A stretch of DNA of 64,000 nt from Cyanophora paradoxa CCMP329. Taxonomy: Eukaryota; Plantae; Glaucophyta. A program made the position numbers and the translations under genes. The notes below the pieces were generated by a model. That model was not told where the DNA came from and did no database searches. It saw nothing but the letters and a program-made list of their open reading frames with translations. Below, piece after piece: positions 35,960-56,060 of this stretch (the first letter of the stretch is position 1; each line of letters begins with the position of its first letter). The stretch is from positions 62,001 to 126,000 of the forward strand of contig QPMI01000208.1 in the NCBI GenBank assembly GCA_004431415.1, written 5' to 3'.

Positions 35960-36727
35960 ATAATTATAAGCACGCAAGATTTACAGAGTCGAGTCCGACC
36001 CGCGGGGGCACGTGAAAGCTACGTGCGAATTTCGCAACTTCTCCCGTCTAGCTCCTCGCCACCGAAAATGTCACCTGGCCATCGGCAGCCCTGTGGACCG
36101 CGCGCGCCTATATATCCCGCGAATACCGCAAGAAAGGGCTCTCCCGCGATGCATCGCACCCCCTGAATGCGAGGCTTGCACATGCTCAAATCACGAATTT
36201 TAGCTCCGAGCTCGCACCCCTCATGCATGAAGGTGCACGTGACGCCCCCACGTCGGCGTCTACAGCGCAATAAACCCAAATTAAACGTTACCGTAACGGC
36301 CTCTTTGTTCGCTCAGGCTGCGCTTTCGTGCTAGCTGTAGGCACAGATGGTGGACCGATTCCAGCCCGGCCCCTCTATGCATATGGATCATCGGATGCCG
36401 TCTGCATCAATATCTCAGAGTCTGATCATGGTCATGACTCTGATCATGAGGAACTTCGGAAGACGGCGAGAACGGCCCCAACAACGACAGCGCCGCACGC
36501 CTTGCAATTGCAAGGGGCAGATCTAGACATGACAGGCGACCCCCCAAAATCGTTAGCGGGACGCCTGAAACCCACGACCATGCCTTCATCCGGATCCTCG
36601 AGCTCTGCCCAACAACACGCGCCCGGCCCTCCGATCCGCGTCGAGACCCATGGCCAAACTGAGATATTTCAACATACTGCACGAAACCATATGCATGGCC
36701 ATCACGTCTCGACGTCTCAAAATATTA
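35960..36727 (+). repeat. Segment B; second copy at 37008-37769
   Basis: Near-identical; the difference I found is a 6 bp TTGCAA duplication at 36502-36513. Confidence 0.95.
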
Positions 36728-36765
36728 TAATATTTTGAGACGTCGAGACGTGATGGCCATGCATA
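36690..36765. repeat. Perfect 76 bp palindrome at the duplication junction
   Basis: 38 bp arms, centre TTA|TAA at 36727/36728. Confidence 0.95.
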
Positions 36766-36770
36766 GCGCT

Positions 36771-37769
36771 AGCGGCTCCTCGCGGTCCTCCCGGCGAGGC
36801 CGCCGCGTACCCGTCCTGATCGGAGCTAGCCAGGCTGGCCCGGCGGACCAGGCCGCACGTACACGCAGACGGTAGGGTTGCCGCAAATCGCCCCCAATTA
36901 ATTCGGAAAATCGGATTTTCGATCGCCCACGCACACTGTTCAGAACGCTCTGTCCAGAACGCTCTCAGAGTCAGTTATGTACTTAGCAACTGGCAAAGCA
37001 ATTAATTATAATTATAAGCACGCAAGATTTACAGAGTCGAGTCCGACCCGCGGGGGCACGTGAAAGCTACGTGCGAATTTCGCAACTTCTCCCGTCTAGC
37101 TCCTCGCCACCGAAAATGTCACCTGGCCATCGGCAGCCCTGTGGACCGCGCGCGCCTATATATCCCGCGAATACCGCAAGAAAGGGCTCTCCCGCGATGC
37201 ATCGCACCCCCTGAATGCGAGGCTTGCACATGCTCAAATCACGAATTTTAGCTCCGAGCTCGCACCCCTCATGCATGAAGGTGCACGTGACGCCCCCACG
37301 TCGGCGTCTACAGCGCAATAAACCCAAATTAAACGTTACCGTAACGGCCTCTTTGTTCGCTCAGGCTGCGCTTTCGTGCTAGCTGTAGGCACAGATGGTG
37401 GACCGATTCCAGCCCGGCCCCTCTATGCATATGGATCATCGGATGCCGTCTGCATCAATATCTCAGAGTCTGATCATGGTCATGACTCTGATCATGAGGA
37501 ACTTCGGAAGACGGCGAGAACGGCCCCAACAACGACAGCGCCGCACGCCTTGCAAGGGGCAGATCTAGACATGACAGGCGACCCCCCAAAATCGTTAGCG
37601 GGACGCCTGAAACCCACGACCATGCCTTCATCCGGATCCTCGAGCTCTGCCCAACAACACGCGCCCGGCCCTCCGATCCGCGTCGAGACCCATGGCCAAA
37701 CTGAGATATTTCAACATACTGCACGAAACCATATGCATGGCCATCACGTCTCGACGTCTCAAAATATTA
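36771..37769 (+). repeat. Second copy of segments A+B without the TIR element
   Basis: Identity to 32462-32698 and 35960-36727. Confidence 0.95.
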
Positions 37770-38720
37770 ATCGCAGTCGACGCCGCAGCCACTGCAGCTG
37801 GCGACCCGGCTTACAAGCTGCCCCCGGCCCTGGCCTGCGCCAGGACGGACTGCTATATTGCGCGCTCCTGCGCCAACTGTTCAACGGTTCCCGGCCTTCG
37901 CACTGGCTGACGATGCGAACTGGGGCTGGTCAGAGCGACAACGCCACTGGGGCCAGCGGCCGGGACCCCTTCCCCGGCCCCCGCATAATCGCGCCGCCGC
38001 CCGCCGCGCCTCCGCCCGCGGCCGGGGCGCCGCGCCGCGCGCGCGCTCCGCTAGCGCTCTGCCGGCGAGCAGCGCGCGCCGCCCTAGGCCTCGAGCTCCC
38101 GTGTCCCCGCGCCTGGCCCCGCGCGGTACCCGGTCCTAGCTGGACATGTCGCCCTCCGCGATGTCGACGTCGACTCGCCGTACGCGTGTACATGCATTGC
38201 TTGGCTAACCGGGCGCGGCACGCGGGAGCGCGCAGCGGCCGGCTGCGCGACGCGAGGCCGGCGCCGTGCACGTGACGGGCGGGGCGATCGGGCAGCGGCC
38301 GCGGTCGGCGCGGCTCGCCAGGCGGCGCGGTCGGCGGTCGGCCGGGTGGAGGCGCCGCGGCGCGGCAGCTGCAGGCGGCGGCGCGGCTCGGCCTGCGGGA
38401 CGGGGGCGCGGCGCGCCGCGTCGCGGCGGCGCGGCTCGGCGCGCGCGCGGGCGGGGCGGGTCGGGGGCGTGGCGCGCGGCGGGGCGCAGCGGCTCGGCGG
38501 GCGGGCGGGGGCGCGGTGGGCAGCGGCGCAGCTCTCCGGGCACCGGCGCGCGGGGGGGGAGGCGCGGGCGGCGGCGCGCTGCGCGCAGGCCCAGGCCTAC
38601 GCCTAGCGAGCGAAGATCTAGATAGCCGCTGAGCATGCGCATTACTTAGTTGTTGTATTCTGTCAACGCCGGCGCCCCTACTTTAGACCCCACCTTGCAC
38701 CTCCTGAGACGAGCGGGGGC

Positions 38721-38976
38721 TGTCGGATGGGAAGAAGCCCACCCGGTACGCCCTGCGCGGTCTAGCGCAGGCGGTGGTGATAGCAGGAAGCACAAGTGGT
38801 CTATTCACAAGTGTACCCGTACAGCGACGGCGTACCCCTCAGATGGGGCCGCGCCCGGCGCTAAGTCACAACACAGAGAGCACTACAAGCTAGAAGCTTA
38901 CTAGCGCTAGACTAAGGCTAGAGGCTAACCATAGACTACCAGCTAGCCTAGTCCGAGGGCATCGCGGCATGCGACA
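38721..38976 (-). repeat. 3' LTR
   Basis: Identical to 58978-59233. Confidence 0.97.
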
Positions 38977-38988
38977 ACTCCTCACTCT
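38977..38988 (-). other. Polypurine tract
   Basis: AGAGTGAGGAGT on the minus strand abutting the 3' LTR. Confidence 0.75.
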
Positions 38989-39608
38989 GCATACGATGCG
39001 TCCGCGCATCGGACCGCGCCAAGCTCGTCAGCACGCGCAGCGGGTCTCCCAAATCGCGGCGGCGACGGAGCAGGAGCTCCACTCGAGGAAGATAGGTCAT
39101 CACCAGCAACCAGCAGCACCAGGTCGACGAAGTCGGGGTAGATAATAAGGGTAGAGGTAGCAGGATCCGATACCGGAAATGCATGTACCTAGGCAACCCC
39201 TGGCAAAGCTTGAAAAGTGCTGAAAAGCATAGACTCGAAACCCGTGGGCTGGCCCAAAACTCGCTCCGTACGGCGAGCACCGCAGGAGAGGGGCACGGAT
39301 GGGAAGTTTCACCGCCTCGGAAGAAAACGCGAGGAGGTATCCGGGCCACCCATCAGGCCCAACGAAAGAGCGGGGCACGATAGAGTGAGCCGCCGACTAC
39401 ACGCCTTTCTGGGGCCGTGCACCAACGAAGCCCCACTCTACCACTCCTCTGAGCTCTAGGGCCCGCGCTCCAGAAAAGGGAACGAAAGTCTTCATGGAGC
39501 CAGCACGCCACCGACCCACGCTTGGCCCGACAAGACAGCGCAAGTGTGATCGGCCGACGTCTCCAAGAGAGGACAAGGCTGAGGCAAAGCTGGCAAAGAA
39601 ATCTGCCC

Positions 39609-42314
39609 TCAAGCATCTTCCACCAAGACCACATCTTCGGAGTCGCCCGAGGCCATCTGCTCCAGATCCTCGGCGCCGACGTCAGGGACAGAGTTTGAGT
39701 CTTGATTTGGTTGAGAAGAACTTGCTGATCCATCCACGGGGTCCTCGGAGTTCACTTTACGCGGCCGGCCCAAGCGGGGACGAGCTTGCGACTCAGAGAG
39801 GCGCGGCCGGAAAGGAAGCATGCAGTCGATGTGGGCGACCGTCTCGCGGAGAGGTCGAACCCGCGTGTCGCTCATGGTCGAATAGGGTTTAGCCGATCCC
39901 TTCACGGTGTAGGTGTAACCGCCCGGGTTAACGCCAGTAACCGTGTAAGGTCCGACCCATGAATTGTACAACCCCTTGTCATGGTCGCCCATCCAGCACA
40001 ACACCTTGTCGCCGACCTGGAAGCGACGGCGATGCGGAGGATCACCCGTGCGAGCTACCATGCGATTCCGATAGAACCGCCGGTATTCGCGCGAGGCGGC
40101 ATCGACGCTGGCCGCTGCCCTTGTCATGGCGAGGAGGTAGTCGGCTGGGTGCGTATGGTCGGGATTCGCGAAGCGGACACCTGCACCGAAGCGCACTTCA
40201 CAAGGAAGGTGCACGTCAACGCCACGGTGTAAGACCATCGGTGAGAAACCGGTGGCGGAGTGCACGGTGGTCCGCAAAGCGAGGACGATGTCCGCGTTGT
40301 ACAAGGGCCAATCAGAAAGAGGCCGCTTGTGCTCGCGGCACATCGCGTAGGCGAGAGTTTTGTAAACACCGCCGAGGCGCTCGGCGCCGCCGTTGGTGGC
40401 GTGGTGATAAGCGGCAGCGTGCACAAAGCGCGTGCCCTTTTCTTTGAAGAACTCGTTCCACAGGCCCCCAACCAACTGAGAGCCGCGGTCCGTGAGAATG
40501 CGCGCAGGCACGCCCTCATGCATATAGAAATCGATCGCGGTGGCGAGCAAGGCCTCGCCCGAGACGCGGGCCAGTGGATAGATGTAGCAGAACTTGGTAT
40601 ACGCGTCGACGTACGCGATGATGTACCGCAATCCGTCTTCGTGCATATCCAAGTGGAAGATATCCACCTGCCACAGATCGCCTCGGCCCGAAGGCTGTAT
40701 CACTTGAATAGCGGTACGGCGGGGCTTTACTGCCTTCGCGAACTGGCAGTGGGGGCACGATCGCACGAAGCGAGCGATCGAGGCGTACATGCCTGGCCAC
40801 CAGAATCGTTGGGAAATCCGACGCGCGATCACGGGGGCGCCACGGTGGGCCCAGCCCTCATGATAGGCGTACAGAACTCGATCGATCCAGGCGTCCGGCA
40901 GCACTGGTAAGAATCGGCCGGCAGGCACCAGCGGGTTACGTTCGATGACGCCATCTTCGGCGAGGCTGAAGTCGGCGGCCAATCGCACGAAACGCTCCTG
41001 GGCCCGCAAGCAATGTGCGCAGGAAGGGGGGCAAGGGTCCGCCCCTCGCTTGTCGCCACGCGAGCACCGAGTCGGGTTCTCACCCTTCTCAAAGTAACCC
41101 AAGAGCTTCTTGCAGAAAGAGTCTTCCCTTTGGGCGGCAAGCAGGCGCTCCCGTCTCTCGAGCGGGAACATGCGACGCAGCGAGCCGGGGAGGGCGCCAT
41201 CGATCGCCGGCGAAGGCCCACAGGCCCAGGCGTCAAGGACCGTGTCCACGAAGACCGGCTTGCACGGCGGGCGTACTTCGCGACCTCTGGGGTCAAGCTC
41301 GATCCACCGTCGCGGAGCGAGAGTCTCTGCGGCGACTACCTCGGGGCCCGGAGCCTGAGGAGCTGGCGACGGCTCGCCCCCACGGCGGCGCAGCGGCTTC
41401 GGAGGATCGGGCATGGTAGGCTGCACTCGCATCTGGTTCCGCGCCGTCTCAGGGGAGAGCGAGCGGCGGCGAGAGGGCCCCGGGGGCGGCTCGCCCTCGA
41501 CGGACTCGGGCTCCCAATCCAAGTGGATTGGCACCGGCGCCTCGCTTTGATCAGCTGGGGCACGCCAGTGGCGGGTATTGTGCTCGTTTCGCGGCTGACG
41601 TCTCATGGCTGGACCGCGGGGAAGGACACCGGAGGGGTGCGCGGGACGAGGCTCGGCGAAGCCCCGGCGGTCCCATCGGCGCGGGCCTGTCTCGGCGCGC
41701 GGCGGCAGTTTGCCCAGGAGGGTCAACGGGAATCCGTCGGCGTCGCACTCAGCGTCCAGTTCAGCCTCAGGCGAGACTTCCGACTCTGAATCAGCCGCCG
41801 CGGCCTCGGCGTGTGCACTCTTGAGCAATGCCGGCGGCGCGCCGTCCTCATTGTCGGTGGGGGCGTCCGGCATGTCCACGTCGGAATCCGAGCCGGCCCC
41901 AGGGCCAGTAGTGGGGCGACGGTCTCGCTTCGCAGGCGGCGGGGACGGCGACTCGGGTGCACGAGGCGCGAAGCGCTCGGGTACGGCCCTCGCCCTCTTC
42001 CTTGACTCGTCGTCGCTGGCGGTAGCGGACGCCTTGGCCTCGGCATAGCCCGCAGAGGCGGCGAGCTTAGCAAGCTCGCGGGGCACTCGGCGGCGGCCGG
42101 CCGGCGCGGGTGCAGGCTCGGGGGGCCGCGACTCCTCCTCTGCATTAGAGGAGCGGCCCACTGGTTTCGCAGGTACGGCTGCTGGGCTCGACTCGTCGAC
42201 GGGCGGGCGGCCACGCCGGCGGCCCGAACGATCGAGGCCCGCAGGCACCGCGCCCTGGAAGCCGGCGGAGTCGGCGAGCTTCCGCAGGGCTCGCTCTGTC
42301 GGGCCCAACTGCAC
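39609..42314 (-). CDS. pol: pol: long disordered linker plus integrase (HHCC, DDE, GPY/F)
   Basis: YHEGWAHRG..CPHC, WQVDIF, ILTDRGSQ, NGGAER, WVGPYTV. No chromodomain visible. Confidence 0.93.
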   Translation of the reverse strand: MQLGPTERALRKLADSAGFQGAVPAGLDRSGRRRGRPPVDESSPAAVPAKPVGRSSNAEEESRPPEPAPAPAGRRRVPRELAKLAASAGYAEAKASATASDDESRKRARAVPERFAPRAPESPSPPPAKRDRRPTTGPGAGSDSDVDMPDAPTDNEDGAPPALLKSAHAEAAAADSESEVSPEAELDAECDADGFPLTLLGKLPPRAETGPRRWDRRGFAEPRPAHPSGVLPRGPAMRRQPRNEHNTRHWRAPADQSEAPVPIHLDWEPESVEGEPPPGPSRRRSLSPETARNQMRVQPTMPDPPKPLRRRGGEPSPAPQAPGPEVVAAETLAPRRWIELDPRGREVRPPCKPVFVDTVLDAWACGPSPAIDGALPGSLRRMFPLERRERLLAAQREDSFCKKLLGYFEKGENPTRCSRGDKRGADPCPPSCAHCLRAQERFVRLAADFSLAEDGVIERNPLVPAGRFLPVLPDAWIDRVLYAYHEGWAHRGAPVIARRISQRFWWPGMYASIARFVRSCPHCQFAKAVKPRRTAIQVIQPSGRGDLWQVDIFHLDMHEDGLRYIIAYVDAYTKFCYIYPLARVSGEALLATAIDFYMHEGVPARILTDRGSQLVGGLWNEFFKEKGTRFVHAAAYHHATNGGAERLGGVYKTLAYAMCREHKRPLSDWPLYNADIVLALRTTVHSATGFSPMVLHRGVDVHLPCEVRFGAGVRFANPDHTHPADYLLAMTRAAASVDAASREYRRFYRNRMVARTGDPPHRRRFQVGDKVLCWMGDHDKGLYNSWVGPYTVTGVNPGGYTYTVKGSAKPYSTMSDTRVRPLRETVAHIDCMLPFRPRLSESQARPRLGRPRKVNSEDPVDGSASSSQPNQDSNSVPDVGAEDLEQMASGDSEDVVLVEDA

Positions 42315-43552
42315 GCGGAAGATGCCGAGGGGAACGTCGGGGTCCTCGGGCTCGGCGCCCTCGGCATGCTGGGAACGCCAAAGCCCTCGGCTCCCTTGTA
42401 GGCCGCGGGCGTCGAGGAAGAGCCATCGGCGCCGCCGGGCTGCCAGACGGGGTGGTCCTTAGGGAGGCGCGAACACGCGTCAGGGCCGCCGTTCTGTTTG
42501 CCCGGGCGATAGACAATATCAAAATCGTAAGCCTGCAGGAGCAGGGACCAGCGGCCTAGCCGACCCGTCGTCGGATCGAGGCTTTTCAACCACTGGAGGG
42601 CGTGGTGGTCGGTTCGGACCAGGAACTGGGGCCCGCCTAGCAGATAGTGGCGCCAATACTTGATGGCCCACACGACGGCGAGACACTCGAGTTCCGTAGC
42701 CGAGTAGTTCATCTCAGCCGGCAGCAAAGTGCGGCTGATAAAGGCAAGGGGCGCTCGACGCCGTCCTTGTCCGTCTGGCTCAGAATCGCGCCGATTGCGT
42801 ATGTACTGGCGTCCGTCTGGAGTATGAAGGGCTTCGAGAAATCCGGGAACCGCAATATGATATCGCGACCCAGCAGTTCTTTCAGCTCCTTAAAGGCACG
42901 GTCGGCGGCACCGCCCTCAGGCCAACTCCAGACGGCGTCCTTCAATAGAAGGCGCTGCATAGCGTAAACCACTTTGGAGAAGTTCTCAACAAAGCGGCGG
43001 TAGTAACCGGCGAGGCCCAGGAACGAGCGGAGCTCGTCCGCGTTCTTAGGCGTCTGCCAGTCCGAGATCACCTTGGTCTTCGCGGGGTCCTGCCGGATCC
43101 CCTCGGCGGAGATGCGGTGGCCTAGAAGGTCGATTTCTGGCACGCAGAAGCGGCACTTCGACGGCTTCAGGCGCAAGTTCGCCTTGGAGATCGCTTCGAA
43201 AAGCGCCTTCAAGTCCAAGAGGTGCTGATCGATCGACGGCGAGAACACCGTGATGTCATCGATGTAGGCCACGACACAGGTCGTCAGGAGAGGGCCCAAG
43301 ATCGCGGTGATCGCACGAGAGAAGGCCGCAGGGCCATTGGTCACCCCGAACGGGGTCACGCGCCACTGGAAGTGACCCCAGGGGACGACGAATGCAGTGT
43401 ACGCGCGCGAGCCGGGGTGGAGAGGGAGCTGCCAGAAGCCGGCGGTAGCATCCGCCGTCGAGAAGACCATCGAGCCGCGCAGGCGCTCGAGCTGGTCGTC
43501 GATGCGGGGCAGCGGGAATACGTCGCGCTCCGTGATCTGATTAAGCCTTCTC
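42315..43552 (-). CDS. pol: pol: reverse transcriptase (N-terminally deleted) plus RNase H, frameshifted
   Basis: FPLPRIDD, GFWQ, PFGVTNGPAAF, YIDD, FLGLAGYYRRFV, LQTDAS, NYSATELECLAVVWA, TDHHAL. Confidence 0.93.
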
Positions 43553-45130
43553 GTCTCCGAGCCTTGCGGACTGTCATCACGTCATGTAACGAGCGGACGG
43601 CGCGTAGGATGTCGGCTTCCCCAGCCTCTGTGAGCTTGGGGAAGGTCCCGCGCAGCGTTGCGCCTGCGGGCACGGCCACGGCTTCGACCGCGTCGGCAAA
43701 TTCGGTTGCCGGCGGGCCCGAGATCGGTACTGTTGTCGGAGATGCGCTTCTCTGGGACGCGCCGTCGAGGTCAGAGGCGTCGTCGAAACTAATAAGGCTC
43801 ATAGCGTCCGTCTCTTGCCACGGCCGGTCATAGACATCGAACGGCATTGCGCCGAATGCGACAACGAGATCATCGGCGTCGTAGAGCGGCGCGCGGGTCG
43901 GGCCCGGAGGGCCAAGCACAGGTAGAGCAGCGGTGGCTGCCCGTGCTTCTTCAGCTGCAGTTACTACGGCGCGCAGCGAGGTGATGATCTTTTCGACATC
44001 TTTGGCAGGCTCGTAAGCCGCCCCAAGCATGCGCGCTTTTCTATTGAAGTGGCGAAGTCCCGTGCGGCGTTTAGCCGGCACAATTCGCATGCGGCGAATT
44101 AAAAGATCAGTCAGATCTTTGGGACTGGTGGGAATTTGCTCAGGCTCATACAAGAAATCACCAGGGGGCAAAGCCACTGCCTCGGCGACTGCTACTACTG
44201 AACCTAAGGGGAGGGTAACTGGCTGGCGTCTGGGGTTACACAGCCGCACGTGGAACATTTTGTTCCCCGGGTTGTTGTGCAGCTGGAAGGGGCAGAGTAC
44301 GCCCAAGGCTTGAGGCGACTCCGGCGAGGGCTCGACGTAGAGGTGCGGCAACTCACGCGTTGCCGGGCCCTGCCCATTGAGCGTACATGGGACGAGGGCC
44401 TCTCCGACGGGGAGCTTTACAGGTCCGAGCACGCGGACCAGGATCCCAAGCTGGTCCGGAGCCGAAAAGGGACGACAACCTCACGGTAGTGGCTGTCGCG
44501 GGCGCGGAGGCACCAGCCCGACAGCGTAGTATCGATCTGGCCGTGGATGGCCTGGATGGCATCCAGGCCGAGAAGAATGTCGGGCTCGGGGCCCATGACG
44601 CCGCGCGGGACGACGAAAACACGACGGCAGAAACGGAGAGTCCCGAGGATGAAAACTACGTCGGCGCGACGGCAACGGATTTTGTCGCGGTCCATGAAGC
44701 CACGAACTACGGTGTGGCCCTCGACGTAATTGACTTCGTCGGGCGGCAGGCGATCGAGGACTTCCTGCGGGACGACGGTGCCTTGGGCGCCCGTGTCGAT
44801 GACGATGCGGACAGGCCGCTCGGCGCCCGACCGTCCGTTGGGGAGTCGCATCGCGATGCAGCCTGGGATTTGCAGTGTTTTTGGCCGGAAGAACTCGAGC
44901 GTTTTGTCGCGAGGCCAGCCGGTGCGGGCCTTGCGGACGTAGTACTCGGGTTCCGGCGGGGCGGGCGGTCCCGCAAGGTCGGGGCTGCCCGCTTCAGAGC
45001 TCGGCGAGGACGGGCGCGAGTTGCGAGCGGCTGCGCGGCGCGCGATCCGCTGCTGCTCCGCCTGCTCCTCCGCGGGGGACGGGCGCGAGCGTTTACGCCG
45101 GCTCGGGCCGTGACGGTTTGCATAAATCAA
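43553..45130 (-). CDS. pol: pol: retropepsin aspartic protease plus dUTPase-like linker, frameshifted at ~44470
   Basis: IVIDTGAQ and ILLGLD. The following segment VRLCNPRRQPVTLPLGSVVA resembles degenerate dUTPase-like folds. Confidence 0.82.
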
Positions 45131-45444
45131 CTCGTCGGCGGGCGGGTCGTAGCCCGCGCGCGTGCCCAGCGGAGTGTCCTCTGCCGGCCGAGGGACGTTT
45201 CAAACTGAACGGAGTTTGCGTCACGCCCCGCCCATTGTTAACTTCTTCCGCCAATGAAATTAGCCCAGCGCAAACTTGAGCTCGAACTTGGCCTCGTACA
45301 CAGTGGCGTACACACGCGGCCACAACGGTCACAGTAACGGTCAGCAGGCCGGCTTGCTAGTCAGCTTCCCTCGGCTAGGCCGGACTAGCTAGCTTCCCGC
45401 CATCGCGCACGCCCGAGCGCGAGCATTCCTGCACGCCGCCGTGC

Positions 45445-47072
45445 ATGAAGCAGTCAAAGCGAAAGGAACCCAGCCTCTGGGATGACGGCTTCGACGAGGC
45501 CCGACGTCGGCACCGCTGGCACGGCAAGCGACCCGACAGCAGCAGCTCGTGGGCCGGCAAGGGCAACATGAAGCGTGTCAACAAGATCACTCAGCAGGCG
45601 CGCAAGGCGAAGGAGCCCAAGCTCCCTGACCTCGACATCCTCAAGGGCGAGCACCCCGCGGCAACGGTCCGCTGCCTGGACACCAGCGGCCGCGCCTACC
45701 ACGTTCGCCTTGGCGACTTCGTCATCTGTTCAGTTAGCTCAGACACCCAGCTGTGTCCAGAACTCAGCGTCGTTCGCCCGAAGCCCTTCCATTTCCCGCG
45801 CCCAGGTGAAACGATTTTGGCGCGAGTCGAGGGCGAGTTCCCAACACAGACGAAGGCGAAGCGCGGCGACTTCAACTACTCCGTCAACGGCGTCATCCTT
45901 CGGCGCTTCGTGCGCCCGGAGGACTCCGATGTGAAGGACTGCGGGCTCGGCAGCGTGATCATCAAGGCAGACGGGGAGCAGGCAGCCGTGGCCATCGCAA
46001 ACCACCTCATCTACTACTCGAACGTGACGGTCCGCCCGCCGCGCCCGCGCCCCGTTCCAGCGTCCGATGCCCGTGCGCGCAGGTTCACGCACCCGCGAAG
46101 GTGGTGGCCGCGGACGAGTACAAAGCCCTCAACCACGCCGATCCCCACATCTACGTCTGTAAGCAAATCATGACGTTCCCGGGCGACGGCTCCTTCCAGT
46201 TCGACGTCGCCCTCGCCTTCAACGCGAGGCTCAAGCGAGTGGCGAAGAAGAAGATGGCGTGCTTCCTCCGGCCGCTGTCGAGGCCGGAGGAGCGCGTGGA
46301 GGCGATTGGCTACCTTCAGGACGCCGCCGCGAACGCCCTCAAGCGCCGGAAGACCGGGACGCAGCTTGTCAACGTCAAGATCCCGGTGGCCGGGCCGGCA
46401 ATGTTGGTCTGCGGCTCTTATGACTCGTTCGAAGTTCTTTTTCCTATCCTCTAACGGTGCGCATCGCAGGAGAACATCGTGGCGCAGGTCGCGCACGTCG
46501 CCACGCCCATCGACCCGAAGACGGGCCAGCCGATCCCGGTTGACAAGCTGCCGGCGGCGAATCGCTTCGTTATCGAGCTTCCGGACCGCGAGACCGCTGC
46601 TGGTGGAAGCCGCTTCCTTTTTCCCGCTCGCTGTTCTTTTTCCGACCTCTTTGCAGCTGTTCTCGGTCCCTCCGGCGTGGCGCAAGCGTCCAAGCGCGTC
46701 TGCAAGCGGGACGCGGACGGGAAGGCGATCCGGAAGCACAGCGAGCACAGCGATCCGGACGCGGACGGGAAGGCGATCCGGAAGGCGAGACGGGGACGGG
46801 AACGGCGCGCGCACACGCTGCTGAAGGTACTCGATCGCTTCAAGGAGCTTGGACGCCATGCGAACCGCATCGGAAACCCGCTTGCAGCCGGTGAGCCTCC
46901 GATAGAGTGCGGCGTCCTCCTCCTCGATGCGAAAGCGGTGCCGCCCGGGCTTGTCCCAGGGGGTGAATCGATCTTCCTCCTCGCCCGTCATCTCGACATC
47001 GCACTTGCGCCGCTTGCACTGCTGCTTGGTGGACGTGGCGGGCTTCTTCGGGGCTGGCTTCTTCGCGGCTGA
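45445..47072 (+). CDS. Antisense intron-containing BAH-domain protein inside the retrotransposon; 3' end uncertain
   Basis: YHVRLGDFVIC..ILARVE..VILRRFVRPEDS..LIYYSN[intron 46030-46082]VHAPAKVVAADEY..IYVC follows the BAH pattern. A second GT-AG intron at 46407-46469 has a CTAAC branch site and keeps the frame. Confidence 0.68.
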
Positions 47073-47780
47073 GCTGGCAGGCGACGGCGCGACAGAGGGA
47101 TCGTCCATATACCGCTCCATGGCAACGAAGGGATCCTCATATTGCTCGCTCGGTGCCGCCGCGGGCGAAGGCTGGGAGGTCGCCGCCGCTGCCCGCTTGC
47201 GACTCACGCGCTTAGGCATGTCCACGGGGGTCGCTGGCGAGGCCGCTGCCGCCGGCGGCTGCGTGCGTGGAGGCGTGGCCGGCTGATCATGCGAAGGCTG
47301 CGATTGCGAGGGCGCAGCTACTACCCGCTTGCGACGCGGGCGATCAGGCGTGTACACGGGGGTCGCTGATGAGGCAGCTGCGACAGGCGGCGTACACGGC
47401 TGTACAGGCGTACCCCCCCCCAAAGGCGTCCCTGGCGTCTCACAGCAGCCGCTGCCGGGGCTCTGCTCGAGCTCTGAGCGTACTGGCGAGACTTGTGGGG
47501 AGTCGCTCCCGCCCGCCGGCTCCGCCGCGGGAGGCGCCAGCGCGACCGCGGCCGTCGCATGCGCAGCTGGCGCTGCATGCGCAGGCTGAACGACTTGCTC
47601 GCTCAAAGCTGCGTCGCCAAAGTCGTCTGGATTCACGTCCTCGCCGAGGTCGTCCTGGCTGCCGCAGGTGCTGCCGCCAATCTGGCCGTGCCGCGGCCTG
47701 CCATCGCTGGCGCCGCCCAGCCACGCTCTAATGGAACCGAACGCTGAGCCGACCTTGGCAGACAGCACAGAGAGCGGCAT
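46451..47780 (-). CDS. Accessory protein, disordered with HLH-like C-terminal segment; 3' end uncertain
   Basis: ATG at 47780, Pro/Ala/Ser-rich region, NLS-like KRRK, then RIEEEDAALYRRLTGCKRV..ASKLLEAIEYLQQ. Possible intron from ~46814. Confidence 0.5.
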
Positions 47781-48089
47781 CTCGATCGCCGAACGCTAAG
47801 CTATAAGCGCTTTTGCTTTTCCCGCGCAAGTCCGTGGCTGGCCGCAATCTAGCTGCAGCTGGCCGTGGCTTGGAAGGGGGGGGAGATGGCTTGGGGGGGA
47901 TATAGAATTTGGTCTAGCCAGCTCGAACTCGAACTCAGCCGGCTGATAGCCGCCGTGACACGGCCGTGTTCAAAATTCAAATTCCATCCATTGTTAAAGC
48001 TCGCGAACTAGCGGGATGTCCAAAAGGTCGCGCCGTTTTCGGCCCGTCGAGGTCCGTCCGGGGCCGTCTGCGACATGCGAAACAGCTCC

Positions 48090-51000
48090 TTACGGGAGGG
48101 CAGCGGTGGGGCGGTTCTTGGCGCTCAGCGCGTGACCGACAGGGACCATCGCCTCCTCGTCCGAGCTGATGCCCTCGGGGTAGATGATGGCCTCAGCCTC
48201 AAGGGCCGTTTTCGGGGCGAAGGCCGCGGTCGGAGTCGACCCTGAGAACCACTCACGGGCGAGGCGTGGCGGGGCTTTGTAGCCCTGCTTGTGCAGCGTG
48301 AGCCCGTAGCGGTTCATGATCGACTGGTGCGCAGCGCGGAGCGCCGGCGACAGCTCGGACGGCTTGACCGTCAGCATGAGGGCCGGGTTCGCCAGCCAGT
48401 TGAAAACTGTGACCGTGGAGCGGGGCCCCAGCTGGTTGAGAAGGCGGCGCGCCCAGGCCGGAGCCTGCTCGCGCTGAGCTGCCGGGGCGGGTTGCTCCTG
48501 TGCCGGCGAGCTAGCGGGCGGGGGCGAGGGCGCCGGGTCCTGGCGCGGCGGGGGGACCGCTGGGGCGGCCCTCTCGACGAGCAGGACGGGCTCTCGGACG
48601 CTGACGCAGGGCGCAGCACTGCGCTCTTCGACTGCGGTGGCGCCCAGGGCTGCGCCGCTCGGGGAAACGTGCAGGTGCGCGGGCAGGTCGCCGTGAACTC
48701 GCGCCGCGCGAATGGGCTCGGCAGTCTCAGCTGCTTTGCGCACCATCCGAACGACTCGCGATCCGGTCGCCTCTGCCTCGCGGGCATGGATTTCGCGAAG
48801 ATCCCGTTGCCGCTCGCGTTCCAGCTGGGTGCGGAACTCACGAGTGACGTCGAGAGTGCGCCGGAGCGACTCGAGCTCGTTGCGAGGGCCCGTCGGAAGG
48901 GTCGACAGGAGGGACGTAACCGTGCCCTCGGGGAGAGTGATCTCCATGGAAATGTTTTGTTTCAGAGCCCGGCTCAGGAGCTCGAGCATTTGACAGCATC
49001 TTCTGTGGGCCTCTTTCCAATTGTCCTGCGGCGCCGCATTGCCGCCCTTCATTCGGCGGTACACGTCGTGCGCGGTGGTCACCCGGCGGTCAACCGTGTA
49101 CACCCAGTTCCGAAGATTCTGGAGTCCGGTGTCTCGCAGGCCCGGGTCACGGCAAGCCGCGCACTCTTGTGCAAAGGCCAGAAGGCCGAGAGTGGCGATG
49201 TTGGCCGCAGGGTCAAAAGAGGAAATCGACGCAGAAGGCCTGGCTTTCTTTTTCTCAGCGGTCTGCGACGTCGGCTGACCGGCCTGGGAGGAGGAGGCGC
49301 TACCCTCCGCAGCGGCAGCGTGCGGCCCCGTCGCACCCTGCTCAGACTGCCCCCCAGGCCCGCTCAGAAAGGGCTGCTTCCCCTTCTCGGCGGCCCGCAA
49401 GCGCTCAAGCTCGGCCCGTTCCGTGGCCGCTAGCGGCTCGGAAGAGCTCTGCGCCGCGGGCGTGGCGGGAGCCGAGCCCCAGCCCCACGCGGGCGCCATC
49501 GCGTACGTGCCGGCCCCGTGGCCGCCGTAGGAAGAGCGCGCTGTGGCCTGGTCCAGCTGGCGCAGCAGCGAGGCACGCAACGTGTCTGTCGTGTACTGCG
49601 CGCGCTTCTTTGCGTCCAGCTGGTGCGTAGCCTCGGCGTACGTCTTTTCCCACAGCGCGGTGTAGGCCTCGCGGGCCGTCGGGTTCTGGTAAACGCGAGA
49701 CGCGTCGCGAACGTGCTCGTCGTACCCGGCCTCTTCGGCGCCCTTGGGCGGCGTCGGTGGGCGGCCCTTTCCCTTCCTGGGGCTGCGGAGACTGTCCCGG
49801 CGGCGGTCGCGCGACCGGGAACGCGATCGTGAGCGCGTTCGGCTGCGCCGGTCCCGCGAGCTGCGGCGCGGGCTGCGGCTCGAACGGTCCCGGGAGGAGC
49901 TGCGCCGGGAGCGCGAGGGGCTCCTGCGGTCGTGGCGGCTTCGCGAGCTGCTCCGGCGGCGCTCAGGGGAGCGGTGCCGGCTGCGACGGTCGTCGCGGTC
50001 GCGGGACCGGCTGCGCCGGGAGTACTTCGATTGGGCCCGGGAGGAGCGGGCCGGCGAGCGCGAGCGGCGCTTTGAGGGTGCCCGTGAGGACTCCCTGTCG
50101 CGTTCACGGGTTGCCGGCGGGGCCGTAGTCTGGCTCGTGCTACTGCGCGGCGAGCGTTGGCCTTCTGTGACCCGAGGCCGATCAGGCGTGCGCCGGGGCG
50201 GCGGCGGGGCCATCGGCGTCTGCTCGCGTGGGGGAGGGGACCGCGGCGGGTGCTGCGGAACAGGCGGTGTGGTCGGGGGAGGCTGCCCGGACTGCCACTG
50301 CCCGGACTGCCACTGCTGTCCTGGCGGTCCGGGGGGCCAGGGCTGGGGGCCGGGCTGCCAGGGCTGACCCTGGAACCCCTGGTTGGGGCCGCCACCCTGG
50401 TAACCTCCGGGACCCTGCCAGCCGCCACGGCCGCGCCAGCCGCCGCCACGCCAGCCGCCACCGCCGCGCCAGCCGCCACGGCCGCGCGAGTCGCCTCCGC
50501 CTCGGCCGCCACGGCCACCATGGCCACCGTGGGGCGCAGCGTGGGGCGGGGTCTGTCCGGCCTGCTGAGGGGCGCTCGAGCTCGAGGCCGCAGCCGGGGC
50601 GACGGCCTGTGCGGCCGCGGGGGCGGGGCCCTCGTTTTCGAGCGGCGTGACGCCCGTCTTTGCATCATCGACTAGTGCCGGCGGGGGAACGAAGTGTGTC
50701 CCCGCCCACGAGGTGCGCACGTCGGCGTCGTAGATCGGCTGGTACGGCGTGCGGACCAGGTGGGCCTCGTCAGGGCTTTGCGCCTTGCCGCGCAGCTTCA
50801 TGACCGGAGCGGCGTTCTTCTGCGTGGTGACGGCGTCCCACATGAGCGCTGGTGAGAGAGCGTCGTTCTCCCATTCCGGGGACTTCAGGGCCTCCCAGTC
50901 GATCTTCGAGTCGCCGACGTGCCCAATCACATGCACGTACTCGGCGTACAGAGTGCGCAGGATTCCCTCGAAGTTCTCTCTCACGCCGAAGGCTGTGCCC

Positions 51001-54000
51001 GTGAACACGAAGCCGTGGGGGAAATTCTCGGGGTGGCTCCAGAGCTCATTGGCGGCTCGAGCGGCCTCGGTGTCGGGGAGCACAGTCGGCTTCCAGGTGC
51101 CGGCGACCTTGGTCACTGGCCAGTGATCCTCCTCGCCAGCCATAGGCGGGGAGGCAAGCTCGAGGCGCTGGTACCCGAGTCCCTGCGGCGTCTGAGCGAG
51201 GTAGTCGCGCAGGGCGCTCGCTACGACGCCCTCGTGCGTCGAGCGGTCCGTCGCCCGCTTCAGGTGGTACTCCAGAACGTCACAGAGCGTCTCGCTCTGT
51301 ACCGCGTTGAGCGGCGCCCGGCCGTCCTTCCGGCGCGGCAGCAGCGGGATCCCGGAGTGCTGGTGGCCCTGGAGAACGGCCAGGAGGATGCGCGAGCAGA
51401 TGGCCAGGCGGCCCTCGTAGTCGGGTACTACTTTACCCTGCTCGTACTTCCAAGCAAGCGTCGGGCGCCCATCGGCGTACGTCGGGCGCGCATCGCGGGT
51501 TCCCTTTTCCTTTTCGGGTTTGGACGGCGGCGGTGTGAGGAAGGCCCTGTGCAGAAATCGCACGAGGCCGTCGGGCACGACGCAGCGGTATGAGTTCAGA
51601 ATGGCGTTTGTGTCCTCGTCGAGCGAGGCCACATTCGCGATGTATCGCTCAACAACCTCGTCGCTGTCCTCGATGACCATCGGCGTGACAGAGAAGTCAT
51701 CGGACCAAGGCTGGCTGCCGAGCGCCTTGCCTGGCGCGTAAGCCTGGAAGCACCGGTGCTGCCACGCGACGGTGAAGCCGGCGAGGGTGCACGCGAGGTC
51801 TTCCTCCACCGGGATCGGGGCCCATGCGAGGGCGGACGAGGTGGCCCCCGCAGACAGCTCGTAGCCAAAGGCGTTGACGAGGGGAGGATGGGCCTTGCTG
51901 CGCTTCGGCGCGCGAGCTAGCTTCCCCATCGTGCCACCCAGCCAGAGCGCTTGGTTGGTTGCCTGGTGCCGAGCATTTGTCTTTGCGTCGGCATCGTGCA
52001 GCTTCCCAAGCACTGCAGTGCCCGCGACGATGCGCGGCGCGTAGGTGCGGACTACTTCGAAGCGCTCACTGTCGCTGCTCTGGGCAGTGCGCTTGTCGCA
52101 GAGCGGGCGGTGGAGATCGAGGATAACGGTCTCGCGCGCGTAACGCGTGCCGAACGGCGACGCGGCAGACTCGACTCGCGTGTCCGCGAGGTTGTTGTTG
52201 AGGACCGCCGTATACGGGGAGGGGTTCATGTCGTCCTGGATATACGGCGGGCTTTCATCGCCGGGGTCATCCACGAAGAAAACGGTGTACAACACGCGCG
52301 CCGTCTGGGCGAGCGCGGAGCTCATGGCGGCGTGCGCCGTTCCCTCATGCGAAATGTCCCACGGGCCTAGGTACGAGGGCACCATGGACTGCGCGGAGCG
52401 CGTGCCGACCGCCAGGTACTGCGCAACGTCCGGGTCGACGCCGCACATGACGTGCGCGAACGCCAGACCCTGGATATCGAACAGCCGGCTCTCCCGCAGG
52501 GGCAGCATCGGCGGGCCTACGGCCGCGAAAAAGTTCGTGATGCCGCGGGCAGCGCTCCCGACTCGCTTCAGGATAGTGGACGCAAACTCGCCCAGGTGCG
52601 TATCGAGGCCATGGATCGCGTCCCCGTAGCTCTCGTCCGTCTCAGTCTCCGAGCGCCACTGCAGCGGGTAGCTGATCGCAGGCAGGGCCGCCCAGTCGAG
52701 GACCGAGCTATCGAAGCAGCCGAGGGGGCGGAAAAACGAGCTCGTCTCAGACAGATACTGCTCGAGCAACGTGTGGTCGTTTAGATACGTCTTTTCCGTG
52801 AGAGAGAACACCGGGCGAGGCTTCCACTTCGGGTGAGGTGCGAAAGCGGCGCCGGCGTGGAGCCGAGCGACCTCGCCCTCCGCGCCCTCGTCGGGGCGGA
52901 GGTCCTCGCCCTCGGGAAGATCGACGAGGAAGGGGTGCAAGGGCGGGTCGGGCTCGTCGGTGTCAGCACCAGCGAGGCGGGCCTCGTCCACCGCGTACGT
53001 CTTCGGGCGACGCAGCATTTTCAAGATGGAGTCGCGCATCGCGGCCCACTCCGCCGTCGCAGCGGTCTCGAAGATGCTGGCCCGCGACGCAAGGCGCAGG
53101 TACTTACGAGCCCACCTCAGCCCCTTCGGCAGCTCCAGGGCTGCTCGGGCCGCCGACGGGGCTTCCGCGGCCGGGGCCTCGTCGAGGAGCAGCGCGTGGG
53201 CCTGCAGAAGGTAGCGCGCGACGCTCGACGGGATGACGACCGCATTCGGGTTGAAGCGATTCTCGTGCACCCAAGCCGGCGTGCGCGGCTGCGGGATGCG
53301 CCAGCGAGCCGTGAGATACCACTCGACATCGTCCTGCGCCCAGTCATGGAGGCTGGTCGGCAGGCCATCGGTCTGAGGAGTGATTTCAGAAACCAGCCCC
53401 AGGCCGAGCATGAGCAGCTCAAGAGCCGCAGCGTTCTCGCGGGCGATCCGAATGGAGCTCGGCGCGCGGCGGGCCGGGAGGCCGGCCAGCGGTACGACGG
53501 CGGGGAGCGGGTTGTCCGCGCGCTCGTACGGCTGCGAGCCGCACTCCTCGATGATGAAATCTTTCAAGTGGGGGACGCGGAGCGTCTCGAGCGTCCCCTT
53601 GACAGCGGACGTTTCAATACCCCAGCGTGCTGCCAGAATTTTGCGCTGGGCAGGCGGCCAATTCTCAAGGCTCTTGCCGCGGTTGTGCGGCGAGACCCTG
53701 GGCACTACGAGGGCTCCGCCAATGACCCCAAGCGCTTCGTACAGGGCGTACTGGGCGGGGTCGTCGGCGTCGGGAGTCCCGGCAGGCTCAGGCTGGGACG
53801 CGGGCTGCGTGGGCTCGCTGGGGCCCTCGCCGCCACCTCCCCCCTCATCGCGCTTCTCCGACATGGGCACATCACCCTCCTTGTCCTTCTGGGGCTCCTG
53901 GCCCTGGGCGCCCTTGCGGCCCCGCCCCTGGCCCCGCCGGCCGCCTCCGCGGCCCTGACCCTTCGCGCCCCCAGCCGCTGCCTGCCGCGGCTTCCCGCCA

Positions 54001-54959
54001 GCTAGTGGGCCAGGCTCGTGCGCAGGGTTGAGGGCGGGCGTCGGCGTCCGCGGAGGCGAGAGGCGGCCGCCGGGCAGGATCGCCGGCTCGGGCGCGGCTG
54101 TCTGCGGCACGAGAGCGGCCGCAGCCTGCAGCGTGAGCCCGATGGCCTTCACGGTGGCCTGGCCGTCGAGAGCGCGGGCGTGCGCCTCGCGATCGAGCTT
54201 CGAGGCGACCGGGGTCGTCGTCGGGCAGCTCGGATCCAAGCGCCACTTCTCTGCGAACGCGATGAGCTGGTCGACCTCCTCGTCGCTCAGACCGCCGCTC
54301 TTCCGCTTGAGGCGGCGGTACAGAAGGATGAGGTGTGCGCGCGAGTGGGGCGGAGTGCCCTCAATGTACTTGATGAGGCGGGCGCTGCCGGCACTCCCCG
54401 TCACAGTCTTAATGTGGACGAGGCTCTTCAGGGTTTCCAAGGGCTCGGTGGGCCCCAGGGGGCTCAAGATCGAGACCTCCTCCGGGATGATAGTGGGCTG
54501 ACGCCCAGCATCCTTGTCGGCATGCAAGGTCAGCTGCGTGCCCCGCGTCGCCGGCCGCACGAGCCCCAGGTACCAGCCCGTCGGGACTGGCGCCTTGGAG
54601 TCGCCAGGGGCCGGCGGGCGGTGACCCAGCAGCGCGTAGAGCCAGGCGGTGCACAGCGGAAGGTCGCGGAGCGCGAGGATGCGCTCGGCGGCGAGGCCCT
54701 CGCCGACCGACATCCGCTCGACGACGCAGGCGTCGCTGAGCCGGCTGTAGTCCGGGGCGCGCCCCTTGCGGTACGCCTCATGGCGCTCGTGGGCGGCCCT
54801 GGCCAGCCAGCCCTCAGTGTCCTTCACCGAGTGGAGCACCTTCGCTGACGGAACTGGCAGCTCGAGCGAGAGCGCCGCGGTCGTGAGCAGGTGCACCGCA
54901 GTCGTGAAGTCAAAGTCCGAGGGGCAGGCACGGCCTCGCTCGCGAGGAGAGCGGCACAC
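48090..54959 (-). CDS. 2289 aa uncharacterised ORF with RGG- and RS-rich regions; probable C-terminal part of the giant Gag ORF
   Basis: Uninterrupted 6.9 kb frame with protein-like composition. No domain recognised. Confidence 0.85.
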   Translation of the reverse strand: MCRSPRERGRACPSDFDFTTAVHLLTTAALSLELPVPSAKVLHSVKDTEGWLARAAHERHEAYRKGRAPDYSRLSDACVVERMSVGEGLAAERILALRDLPLCTAWLYALLGHRPPAPGDSKAPVPTGWYLGLVRPATRGTQLTLHADKDAGRQPTIIPEEVSILSPLGPTEPLETLKSLVHIKTVTGSAGSARLIKYIEGTPPHSRAHLILLYRRLKRKSGGLSDEEVDQLIAFAEKWRLDPSCPTTTPVASKLDREAHARALDGQATVKAIGLTLQAAAALVPQTAAPEPAILPGGRLSPPRTPTPALNPAHEPGPLAGGKPRQAAAGGAKGQGRGGGRRGQGRGRKGAQGQEPQKDKEGDVPMSEKRDEGGGGGEGPSEPTQPASQPEPAGTPDADDPAQYALYEALGVIGGALVVPRVSPHNRGKSLENWPPAQRKILAARWGIETSAVKGTLETLRVPHLKDFIIEECGSQPYERADNPLPAVVPLAGLPARRAPSSIRIARENAAALELLMLGLGLVSEITPQTDGLPTSLHDWAQDDVEWYLTARWRIPQPRTPAWVHENRFNPNAVVIPSSVARYLLQAHALLLDEAPAAEAPSAARAALELPKGLRWARKYLRLASRASIFETAATAEWAAMRDSILKMLRRPKTYAVDEARLAGADTDEPDPPLHPFLVDLPEGEDLRPDEGAEGEVARLHAGAAFAPHPKWKPRPVFSLTEKTYLNDHTLLEQYLSETSSFFRPLGCFDSSVLDWAALPAISYPLQWRSETETDESYGDAIHGLDTHLGEFASTILKRVGSAARGITNFFAAVGPPMLPLRESRLFDIQGLAFAHVMCGVDPDVAQYLAVGTRSAQSMVPSYLGPWDISHEGTAHAAMSSALAQTARVLYTVFFVDDPGDESPPYIQDDMNPSPYTAVLNNNLADTRVESAASPFGTRYARETVILDLHRPLCDKRTAQSSDSERFEVVRTYAPRIVAGTAVLGKLHDADAKTNARHQATNQALWLGGTMGKLARAPKRSKAHPPLVNAFGYELSAGATSSALAWAPIPVEEDLACTLAGFTVAWQHRCFQAYAPGKALGSQPWSDDFSVTPMVIEDSDEVVERYIANVASLDEDTNAILNSYRCVVPDGLVRFLHRAFLTPPPSKPEKEKGTRDARPTYADGRPTLAWKYEQGKVVPDYEGRLAICSRILLAVLQGHQHSGIPLLPRRKDGRAPLNAVQSETLCDVLEYHLKRATDRSTHEGVVASALRDYLAQTPQGLGYQRLELASPPMAGEEDHWPVTKVAGTWKPTVLPDTEAARAANELWSHPENFPHGFVFTGTAFGVRENFEGILRTLYAEYVHVIGHVGDSKIDWEALKSPEWENDALSPALMWDAVTTQKNAAPVMKLRGKAQSPDEAHLVRTPYQPIYDADVRTSWAGTHFVPPPALVDDAKTGVTPLENEGPAPAAAQAVAPAAASSSSAPQQAGQTPPHAAPHGGHGGRGGRGGGDSRGRGGWRGGGGWRGGGWRGRGGWQGPGGYQGGGPNQGFQGQPWQPGPQPWPPGPPGQQWQSGQWQSGQPPPTTPPVPQHPPRSPPPREQTPMAPPPPRRTPDRPRVTEGQRSPRSSTSQTTAPPATRERDRESSRAPSKRRSRSPARSSRAQSKYSRRSRSRDRDDRRSRHRSPERRRSSSRSRHDRRSPSRSRRSSSRDRSSRSPRRSSRDRRSRTRSRSRSRSRDRRRDSLRSPRKGKGRPPTPPKGAEEAGYDEHVRDASRVYQNPTAREAYTALWEKTYAEATHQLDAKKRAQYTTDTLRASLLRQLDQATARSSYGGHGAGTYAMAPAWGWGSAPATPAAQSSSEPLAATERAELERLRAAEKGKQPFLSGPGGQSEQGATGPHAAAAEGSASSSQAGQPTSQTAEKKKARPSASISSFDPAANIATLGLLAFAQECAACRDPGLRDTGLQNLRNWVYTVDRRVTTAHDVYRRMKGGNAAPQDNWKEAHRRCCQMLELLSRALKQNISMEITLPEGTVTSLLSTLPTGPRNELESLRRTLDVTREFRTQLERERQRDLREIHAREAEATGSRVVRMVRKAAETAEPIRAARVHGDLPAHLHVSPSGAALGATAVEERSAAPCVSVREPVLLVERAAPAVPPPRQDPAPSPPPASSPAQEQPAPAAQREQAPAWARRLLNQLGPRSTVTVFNWLANPALMLTVKPSELSPALRAAHQSIMNRYGLTLHKQGYKAPPRLAREWFSGSTPTAAFAPKTALEAEAIIYPEGISSDEEAMVPVGHALSAKNRPTAALP

Positions 54960-56060
54960 TTATGCAGGTCGATGCGACCGGTGTGGCCCCCGAAGCTTCC
55001 CGCAGTTTTCCAGCGAGCCCAGTGCTCGAGGAGGACGAGCGCGAGCCCGTAGGCATCCGTGTGCTCGTCGACCATGAGCGGGGCCGCGAAGTCGAAGTAC
55101 CGCTGGAGAATTTTCTCGGCGGCCTTAGACGACCCCGGGGCACCGTAGTCGAGGCGGTGCAGGTAATAACCGGCGACGCAGGCCGCAGCTGCCAGCCGCA
55201 GGCGGGTCTGGTCGGAAACCAACTGGCCGCGACCCAGGCGCGTCGATCCCATCAGCTGCATCTCGTGCGGCGCGAGTGCGAGGGCGATCGGGGACTGCGA
55301 GCCGACGCTCTCGTGGCCCCGGTAACCCTCGAGCCAGCCCGCGATCGCTATCTCGCCCGGCCGAAGCTTCTGGAGGTCCGGTTCCACCTCCGGCTTGCCG
55401 AAGGCGGTCAGGCCCTTCGTGGGCCACGGCCTCCCCTTGGCAACGCGCTGGGCGTGAAGGCCGACCTGCCGTACCAGGTGCATCGTGCTGAGGTAGCGCG
55501 TCGGCCAGGCGTGCGCCAGCAGGTCGCGCGAGGCGCTGCTGTGCCCCAGCATGTGCAAGAAAGCCGTCGGCAGGGTCGGGGAATCGGTATACACACTCTC
55601 ATCCGCAAACGGCTGCGTGAGCGCCGAGAGCAGGAAGGAGAAAGCCTGGCGAGTGCGGCCAGGGCAGCGGAACGCGGTAGCGTACCACTGCACCTCCGGC
55701 TGCTCGACCAGGCCCTCGAGGCAGTACGTCACACAGTGGCTGAGGCGAGGGTTCGGGTACACGAAACCCTCGCGCCCTAGTTCCACGGGAGCGGCACCCT
55801 TCAGCTTGTGCCCCTGAACATCCCAGAGGATGGCCGGGCCCAGCTCGGCCTCGCGGCCGGGCTCCTCCGTGAGATTTAGGGCGCCGAAGTGTGCTACAGT
55901 GAACCCAGCGCGCGCAAGGTAAGCGCGGTTGGTGCGGATGCACTCCTTAGAGGCGGCCTCGCGATCCTCCTCGGCCGCCGAAGCGCCGTCGTCCGTGACC
56001 GAGAGGCTCGCAACGGTCTCAGCGCCCGACGAGTACTCCAGGCAAGGGCCGACCCGGCGG
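54824..56060 (-). CDS. Middle part of the giant Gag ORF, bounded by 1 bp frameshifts
   Basis: The frame of ORF 54824-55786 stays open upstream to at least ~56060. Both junctions fall at C-runs. Confidence 0.65.

Follow-up and report, generated by a model that had tools for sequence, protein, structure and literature searches.

An intron-containing gene in antisense orientation within a Ty3/gypsy retrotransposon of Cyanophora paradoxa

Introduction

The locus described here raises the question of how a gene with spliceosomal introns came to lie antisense within an LTR retrotransposon of the glaucophyte Cyanophora paradoxa, and whether its product serves the element that carries it. The window, which is the whole stretch of DNA that was analyzed, comprises 64,000 nucleotides of nuclear DNA of strain CCMP329 (contig QPMI01000208.1, positions 62,001 to 126,000), and all coordinates below refer to it. 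The original prediction for the plus-strand gene starting at position 45445 was a BAH chromatin reader that would act in trans, either directing integration or countering silencing, within an element whose integrase has no chromodomain.

The genome of C. paradoxa has a GC content of 67.6%, a mean intron length of 86 bp, and 9.2 introns per gene, and its genes are available as BRAKER/Augustus models; LTR elements are few in it (1.77%) (PMC6704402).

Results

Host retrotransposon

The plus-strand gene is carried by a Ty3/gypsy LTR retrotransposon of 20,513 bp, which occupies positions 38721 to 59233 on the minus strand (Table 1). The two LTRs are 100% identical, and a 5-bp target duplication lies outside them. 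The parts of the element follow each other on the minus strand in the order gag, ORF B, ORF C, ORF D, protease, reverse transcriptase, RNase H, and integrase, and the Pfam domains zf-CCHC, Asp_protease_2, RVT_1, RT_RNaseH, Integrase_H2C2, and rve were detected in this order on the same strand. The LTRs, the target duplication, the CCHC knuckle of gag, and the PR-RT-RH-IN order identify the element as Ty3/gypsy. No TGG-type primer-binding site was seen next to the 5' LTR, and the window contains no tRNA gene for comparison. The sequence CCGACAGGCGCCAC occurs two times over 58953-58983 (minus strand), a stretch that covers the 5' LTR terminus and the expected primer-binding site. Just outside the 3' LTR, a near-perfect tandem duplication of ~770 bp with a spacing of 1,048 bp extends over 35960-37769, and a 237-bp exact repeat (32462-32698 and 36771-37007) represents another young repeat.

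The coding block formed by gag (CCHC), ORF B, and ORF C (48090-58458, minus strand; ~3,400 codons) is, its knuckle aside, an orphan with no Pfam or PDB match, and PDB searches with ORF C and ORF D likewise gave no match. The block was collinear from 58425 to ~51066 (minus strand) with three Cyanophora gene models, P0005-7, at 35-58% identity, and the zf-CCHC knuckle is present in these models as in the element's own gag. This collinearity indicates that giant gypsy elements with a ~3,400-codon orphan ORF1 extension form a conserved Cyanophora lineage.

The pol region begins after a gap of 11 kb from gag, and its frame changes at least four times (at ~44450, 43550, 42745, and 42330, minus strand). 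The frame changes could reflect real decay or PacBio indel/assembly errors, the PacBio-based assembly of the genome being a possible source of the latter (PMC6704402). Unless they are assembly errors, this copy of the element is non-autonomous. The change at ~42745 sits in a C/T run inside the conserved RNase H motif. A search of the integrase C-terminus (296 aa of the ORF) matched no chromodomain at E<=1; the element is without this chromovirus hallmark, as had been noted from the sequence.

The sequence TTAACAATGG occurs exactly two times on the minus strand, at 45232-45241 just upstream of the pol frame and at 47988-47997 in the gap between ORF C and ORF D. The ATG of both sites opens a mini-ORF of 4 codons, and a word resembling GAGTTCGAG is found nearby. 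These TTAACAATGG/GAGTTCGAG sites could be a translation or subgenomic signal.

Table 1. Features of the retrotransposon and of the antisense gene in the window, in plus-strand order
Feature	Position	Strand	Remarks
Target-site duplication, 3' side	38716-38720	-	GCCCC on the minus strand; same 5 nt at both LTRs
3' LTR	38721-38976	-	256 bp; TG..CA; purine-rich tract before it (~38978-38990)
Integrase ORF	39609-42314	-	Zinc-binding domain ~40731-40898; catalytic core ~40404-40685
Reverse transcriptase and RNase H	41723-43580	-	Split over three frames
Protease-containing pol start	44420-45199	-	Opens right after TGA 45200-45202; no ATG
Upstream non-coding spacer	45200-45444	+	Presumed promoter and 5' UTR; contains CGGACTAGCTAGCT; TTAACAATGG on the minus strand
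Exon 1	45445-45727	+	ATG; basic, NLS-like N-terminus
Likely intron a	45728-45805	+	78 nt, in frame; GT..AG; 3' end rich in pyrimidines; coding periodicity absent
Exon 2	45806-46029	+	Codon periodicity and codon score
Intron 1	46030-46082	+	53 nt; GT..AG; frame-shifting; score ~zero or negative
Exon 3	46083-46406	+	Codon periodicity and codon score
Intron 2	46407-46469	+	63 nt; GT..AG; GC 0.51; in-frame stop; pyrimidine tract; score ~zero or negative
Exon 4	46470-46602	+	Codon periodicity and codon score
Likely intron c	46603-46656	+	54 nt, in frame; GT..AG; GC 0.54
Exon 5	46657-46745	+	Final segment common to all other copies
Breakpoint zone	46746-46827	+	Departs here from 20 other copies; weak coding signal
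ORF D	46828-47780	-	ATG 47780; Pro/Ala-rich, then a short helical-looking C-terminus
ORF C	48090-54959	-	2289 aa, orphan; belongs to the gag-B-C block conserved in other Cyanophora elements
ORF B	54824-55786	-	Between gag and ORF C
ORF A (gag)	55894-58458	-	CCHC knuckle (Pfam zf-CCHC)
5' LTR	58978-59233	-	256 bp; followed by repeated CCGACAGGCGCCAC at the place of a TGG-type primer-binding site
Target-site duplication, 5' side	59234-59238	-	GCCCC; matches the other flank

Coding signal and introns of the antisense gene

The coding signal was followed by the GC content of codon positions and by a log-odds score of codon usage, for which gag and ORF C of the element served as the training set. 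By both measures, plus-strand coding signal inside the element was confined to positions 45445 to ~46827. The ATG at 45445 opens a frame with a GC3 of 0.83-0.90 and a GC2 of 0.41-0.47, and the five coding pieces scored +0.36 to +0.68 bits/codon, with positive values in the annotated frame only. The segment represents a true copy of a protein-coding gene that is spliced, its five exons being separated by four short introns of the GT-AG type; the predicted plus-strand gene and its start codon are borne out by the GC periodicity, the codon usage, and the gene models.

Introns 1 and 2, which had been named from the sequence, were confirmed by the frame shift of the one and the in-frame stop of the other, by their non-coding scores, and by independent Augustus/BRAKER gene models of other copies, in which the junction of intron 1 recurs in 22 of 24 and that of intron 2 in 21 of 24. 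By the open-frame criterion alone, the positions of intron 1 and intron 2 are not unique, as 15 and 30 GT..AG pairs, respectively, leave the frame open. The predicted exon layout was correct for these two introns but overlooked two likely in-frame introns, a and c, the former of which had been counted as exon. The codon score of both is around zero or negative. Intron a is spliced out in gene models P0002 and P0004, and intron c, which has a 19-nt pyrimidine motif in common with intron 2, is spliced out in P0013, P0015, P0022, and P0023.

The CGGACTAGCTAGCT in the upstream spacer resembles an LTR motif, at a similarity not above that of shuffled sequences. The spacer as a whole (242 nt) was rejected as an LTR-derived promoter, its best match being 15 nt long and within the shuffle range.

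Copies of the gene in the genome

The gene is represented by 24 gene models, which are distributed over at least 22 contigs, and at least 24 near-identical copies are present in the genome. Where models are co-linear, they differ from one another in 0-4 of 340 residues. Twenty of the 24 models, which represent 21 copies, run past 46745 into a common segment (TVTVEKAYGG ... SLAGP) followed by a Pro/Ala-rich tail, and neither this segment nor the tail is found anywhere in the window. Among the 24 models, the window-type end was seen only in P0022 and P0023 (tig00000881), and P0022 (tig00021038_g17499) is this very locus, with a 100% match that includes the last small exons. Up to codon 395, the reading frame is undisrupted and does not differ from that of other copies.

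Two further arrangements were observed. In P0001, the gene forms a fusion with the host ketoacyl-synthase gene immediately upstream of it. P0029 and P0028, two adjacent models on contig tig00020848, contain three partial copies head to tail, which hints that the main vehicle of the gene can form tandem arrays. The fusion and the tandem copies are hard to reconcile with a gene whose only vehicle is a 20-kb element. Because all copies keep the frame-shifting and the stop-containing intron, the gene was presumably never copied via its own spliced RNA; its vehicle would be DNA-based or else a retroelement in antisense orientation to the gene. An argument from copy number (24 gene models versus 2-3 gag-B-C models) was discarded, since the window's own gag-B-C model was absent from the same search.

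3' end of the gene and its collision with ORF D

A 35-nt direct repeat (46702-46736 and 46750-46784, 91% identical) brackets the point at which the window departs from the 20 other copies. From 46828 onward, the periodicity and the codon score switch to the minus strand. The 3' end of the gene had been placed at 47072; this could not be upheld, as the last 245 nt (46828-47072) are the antisense of the minus-strand ORF D. ORF D itself meets no stop codon until 46014, so that the plus-strand gene and ORF D converge head-on at ~46828 with a stop codon in neither at that place. The lack of stops at this collision, together with a pol frame that follows a TGA without an ATG, gives the region the appearance of a rearrangement junction.

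ORF D contains an internal 87-nt duplication (47173-47259 and 47305-47391, 78% identical) that encodes two similar Pro-rich basic peptide repeats. On the sense strand of the element, a phase-0 GT..AG pair runs from 46814 to 45179 (minus strand), and removal of the 1,636 nt between its ends would take out the whole antisense gene. The joining of ORF D to the protease frame by this pair was derived by hand arithmetic only, and many such pairs occur by chance.

Properties of the predicted protein and searches for a BAH domain

The encoded protein is basic (pI 9.7) with a strongly basic, NLS-like stretch in its first 65 residues, and the gene product is an orphan and probably nuclear. Its central region contains 0 Trp, 6 Tyr, and 11 Phe residues. 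Exons were searched singly, and full-length searches used the database gene models P0002, P0010, and P0012; P0010, P0012, and P0016 equal the window exons through 46745, barring one Pro/Leu site in some models.

The BAH family (PF01426) was not matched at E<=10 by exons 1, 2, and 4, by the 242-aa ORF, or by the spliced models P0002, P0010, and P0012. More generally, the exons and the three models gave nothing at E<=10 in Pfam beyond chance-level matches to unrelated families, including no TRP28 (PF04195) or other known antisense-ORF domain; matches weaker than about E=0.1 may have been removed by filtering in HMMER. A phmmer search against PDB at E<=10 returned no BAH structure but only an ankyrin protein and gp120, both at chance level. 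When exon 1 was compared by phmmer with 1.84 billion representative proteins, only Cyanophora paradoxa copies (EukProt EP00741) were retrieved, and a metagenome scan with P0010 gave no match. P0027 was discarded as a relative, since this AT-rich sequence from an unrelated metagenome had been placed in the cluster spuriously. Internal paralogy was also rejected, as no similarity was found between the gene and gag or ORFs B, C, and D. AlphaFold2, run without a usable alignment, reached a pLDDT of 36.3 for exon 1 and 32.8 for P0010:60-320, values that are low because the only homologues are near-identical copies.

As a result, the BAH assignment is unsupported and fails at the level of sequence: no profile or PDB search reproduced the BAH-like pattern that splicing was thought to complete. 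The sole pointer to a putative chromatin-related role is the basic, NLS-like N-terminus. The proposed function in integration targeting or anti-silencing is thus left without a BAH signal, in a copy that is shortened at its 3' end and runs stopless into an opposing ORF. With its C-terminal part missing and with this stopless run, the gene resembles a truncated passenger more than a factor tuned to target integration.

Discussion

With moderate confidence, we regard the gene as a 3'-truncated copy of a repeated gene that is carried in, and moved with, a gypsy element, its likeliest state being that of a passenger. A DNA-level insertion or rearrangement may have put a 5' gene fragment (~1.4-1.6 kb, ~45200-46827) between ORF D and pol. 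The fragment would have lost the conserved C-terminal exon(s) after 46745 that are present in 20 other copies, and the composite element would since have been copied by retrotransposition, as indicated by the lack of differences between the LTRs, by the target duplication, and by the recurrence of the junction elsewhere (at least two loci share it). The gene lies antisense inside the LTR retrotransposon, as predicted, and this orientation accounts for the survival of its introns, the genomic RNA being the complement of the strand that bears the splice signals. The retention of antisense introns in retrotransposition is established behaviour. Such a carried-along passenger may still be transcribed, and an adaptive accessory role for the element is possible. 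A nested DNA transposon was rejected as the vehicle, as no terminal inverted repeats or target duplication were found around 45200-46830. Three considerations count against the preferred interpretation. The 395 intact codons, identical to those of other copies, make a truncated yet functional protein possible; the frame changes of pol may stem from errors of the PacBio assembly (PMC6704402); and the long-tail copies might reside in fuller versions of the same gypsy family, in which case the gene would be regular cargo and the present copy derived from it by deletion.

The latter thought leads to a possible but less probable explanation, namely that the gene is an integral antisense accessory gene of the gypsy family, comparable to Grande gene23, Retand, or Boty brtn, with a nuclear regulatory product. 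The long-tail copies would then be canonical, and the window would hold a deletion variant in which the gene and ORF D had each lost the 3' end. The introns kept in all copies would be expected if the genomic RNA of every vehicle is antisense to the gene, and the gypsy-linked junction shared by at least two loci and the NLS-like N-terminus are consistent with this explanation, as are the conserved antisense ORFs, some with nuclear products, of other LTR elements (PMC7264820, PMC11963269). That gag-B-C models are missing on other contigs is uninformative here, since the window's own model is missing too. The P0001 fusion and the three tandem partial copies in P0029/P0028 argue against it, however, as do the related giant gypsy families P0005-7, for which no homologue of the gene was detectable among 1.84 billion representatives. 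A more specific form of this idea is unlikely: the gene would be regular, functional cargo of a glaucophyte lineage of giant gypsy elements, its nuclear product, with a fold that is new or has diverged beyond recognition (possibly SH3-barrel/BAH-like), would direct integration or oppose silencing, and the gene would reside within a sense-strand intron (46814-45179). If this were true, the spliced RNA would lead to pol, and the unspliced RNA would carry the antisense gene and its introns to new sites.

A BAH chromatin reader that acts in trans to target integration or counter silencing, and so replaces the chromodomain of the integrase, is very improbable. The chromodomain is indeed missing, the central region seemed beta-rich with short BAH-like motifs when viewed by eye, and a reverse-oriented chromodomain gene is described for Chlamydomonas REM1 (PMC2774666); against this stand the negative BAH searches of Pfam and PDB, the absence of tryptophan from the central domain, and the C-terminal truncation of the copy. 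A function at the RNA level, in which an antisense transcript from the internal promoter would hybridize to the genomic RNA and enter small-RNA silencing or regulation of the element, the protein being irrelevant, has a comparably small probability. The convergent plus- and minus-strand coding regions do meet without terminators at ~46828, such regulation has been proposed for antisense ORFs (PMC7264820), and Cyanophora is described as RNAi-active, with small RNAs from exons (PMC3700990). The strong codon signature and the intact frame in 24 copies nevertheless indicate a protein that is made now or was made recently. The same signature bears on whether there is a gene at all. Chance antisense ORFs are common in 67% GC DNA, long ORFs run on both strands throughout the window, overlapping bidirectional ORFs have been noted for the C. 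paradoxa genome (PMC6704402), and the tail at 46828-47072 of the original prediction was itself such an artefact. The GC3/GC2 periodicity and the codon usage, however, favor the plus strand only here in the element and drop exactly in the GT..AG segments, and the view that no gene exists is close to refuted.

What the locus means depends on the state of the gene. Should the gene be regular cargo, no antisense accessory gene with introns would have been described before in a retrotransposon of a glaucophyte; its place upstream of pol would be unusual, and it would form a natural counterpart to the antisense-intron reporters with which retrotransposition is detected. If it is only a truncated passenger, nothing beyond nested or captured sequence of the usual kind is present, and the main lesson is caution in judging domains and gene ends by eye in 67% GC DNA. 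The gene and the 3,400-codon orphan gag extension in several Cyanophora families point to a little-known giant Ty3/gypsy lineage.

Additional ORFs in antisense orientation are already known from LTR elements. The antisense ORFs of Grande gene23, RIRE2, Retand, and Boty encode products of uncertain role, some of them nuclear (PMC7264820, PMC11963269). Similarly to the Cyanophora gene, maize Grande gene23, rice RIRE2, Silene Retand/TRP28, and Botrytis Boty brtn are coding units antisense to gag-pol in the internal region, with a promoter of their own, as presumed in Cyanophora. These ORFs are located between pol and the 3' LTR, whereas the Cyanophora gene is found before the protease, in the space that separates ORF D from pol; it also has 2-4 spliceosomal introns, no TRP28 or other Pfam domain, and a glaucophyte host. 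Unlike them, the Cyanophora copy is truncated. Its gypsy-linked junction was found at two loci, with 20 models in another 3' context.

The closest precedent for the BAH-reader idea is Chlamydomonas REM1, which is described as an algal gypsy element with a reverse-oriented, presumably chromatin-reading gene (PMC2774666; PHD mention in PMC6673714). The reverse gene of REM1 is recognizably derived from integrase (GPY/F module and chromodomain), whereas the integrase of the Cyanophora element is normally oriented and its antisense protein has no recognizable domain. BAH proteins (PF01426) themselves share with the Cyanophora product the impression of a beta-rich domain and a few short motifs, a likeness with no profile or sequence support.

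Gene-fragment transduction or nested insertion, as in maize Bs1, also amplifies foreign coding sequence, often truncated, inside an LTR element (PMC7264820). Classical transduction through read-through or spliced RNA yields sense, intron-less sequences in one or few copies, in contrast to the Cyanophora fragment, which is antisense and has introns. The antisense orientation and the kept introns thus argue for acquisition of the fragment at the DNA level. HTLV-1 HBZ is a spliced gene. Like the Cyanophora gene, it is antisense within a reverse-transcribing element, and an antisense promoter has been noted (PMC7264820). The two have no sequence relationship, and HBZ is located at the 3' LTR, whereas the Cyanophora gene is located between the gag-side ORFs and pol. 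In summary, the Cyanophora case differs from the known ones in its position, its introns, its orphan protein, its host lineage, and its truncation.
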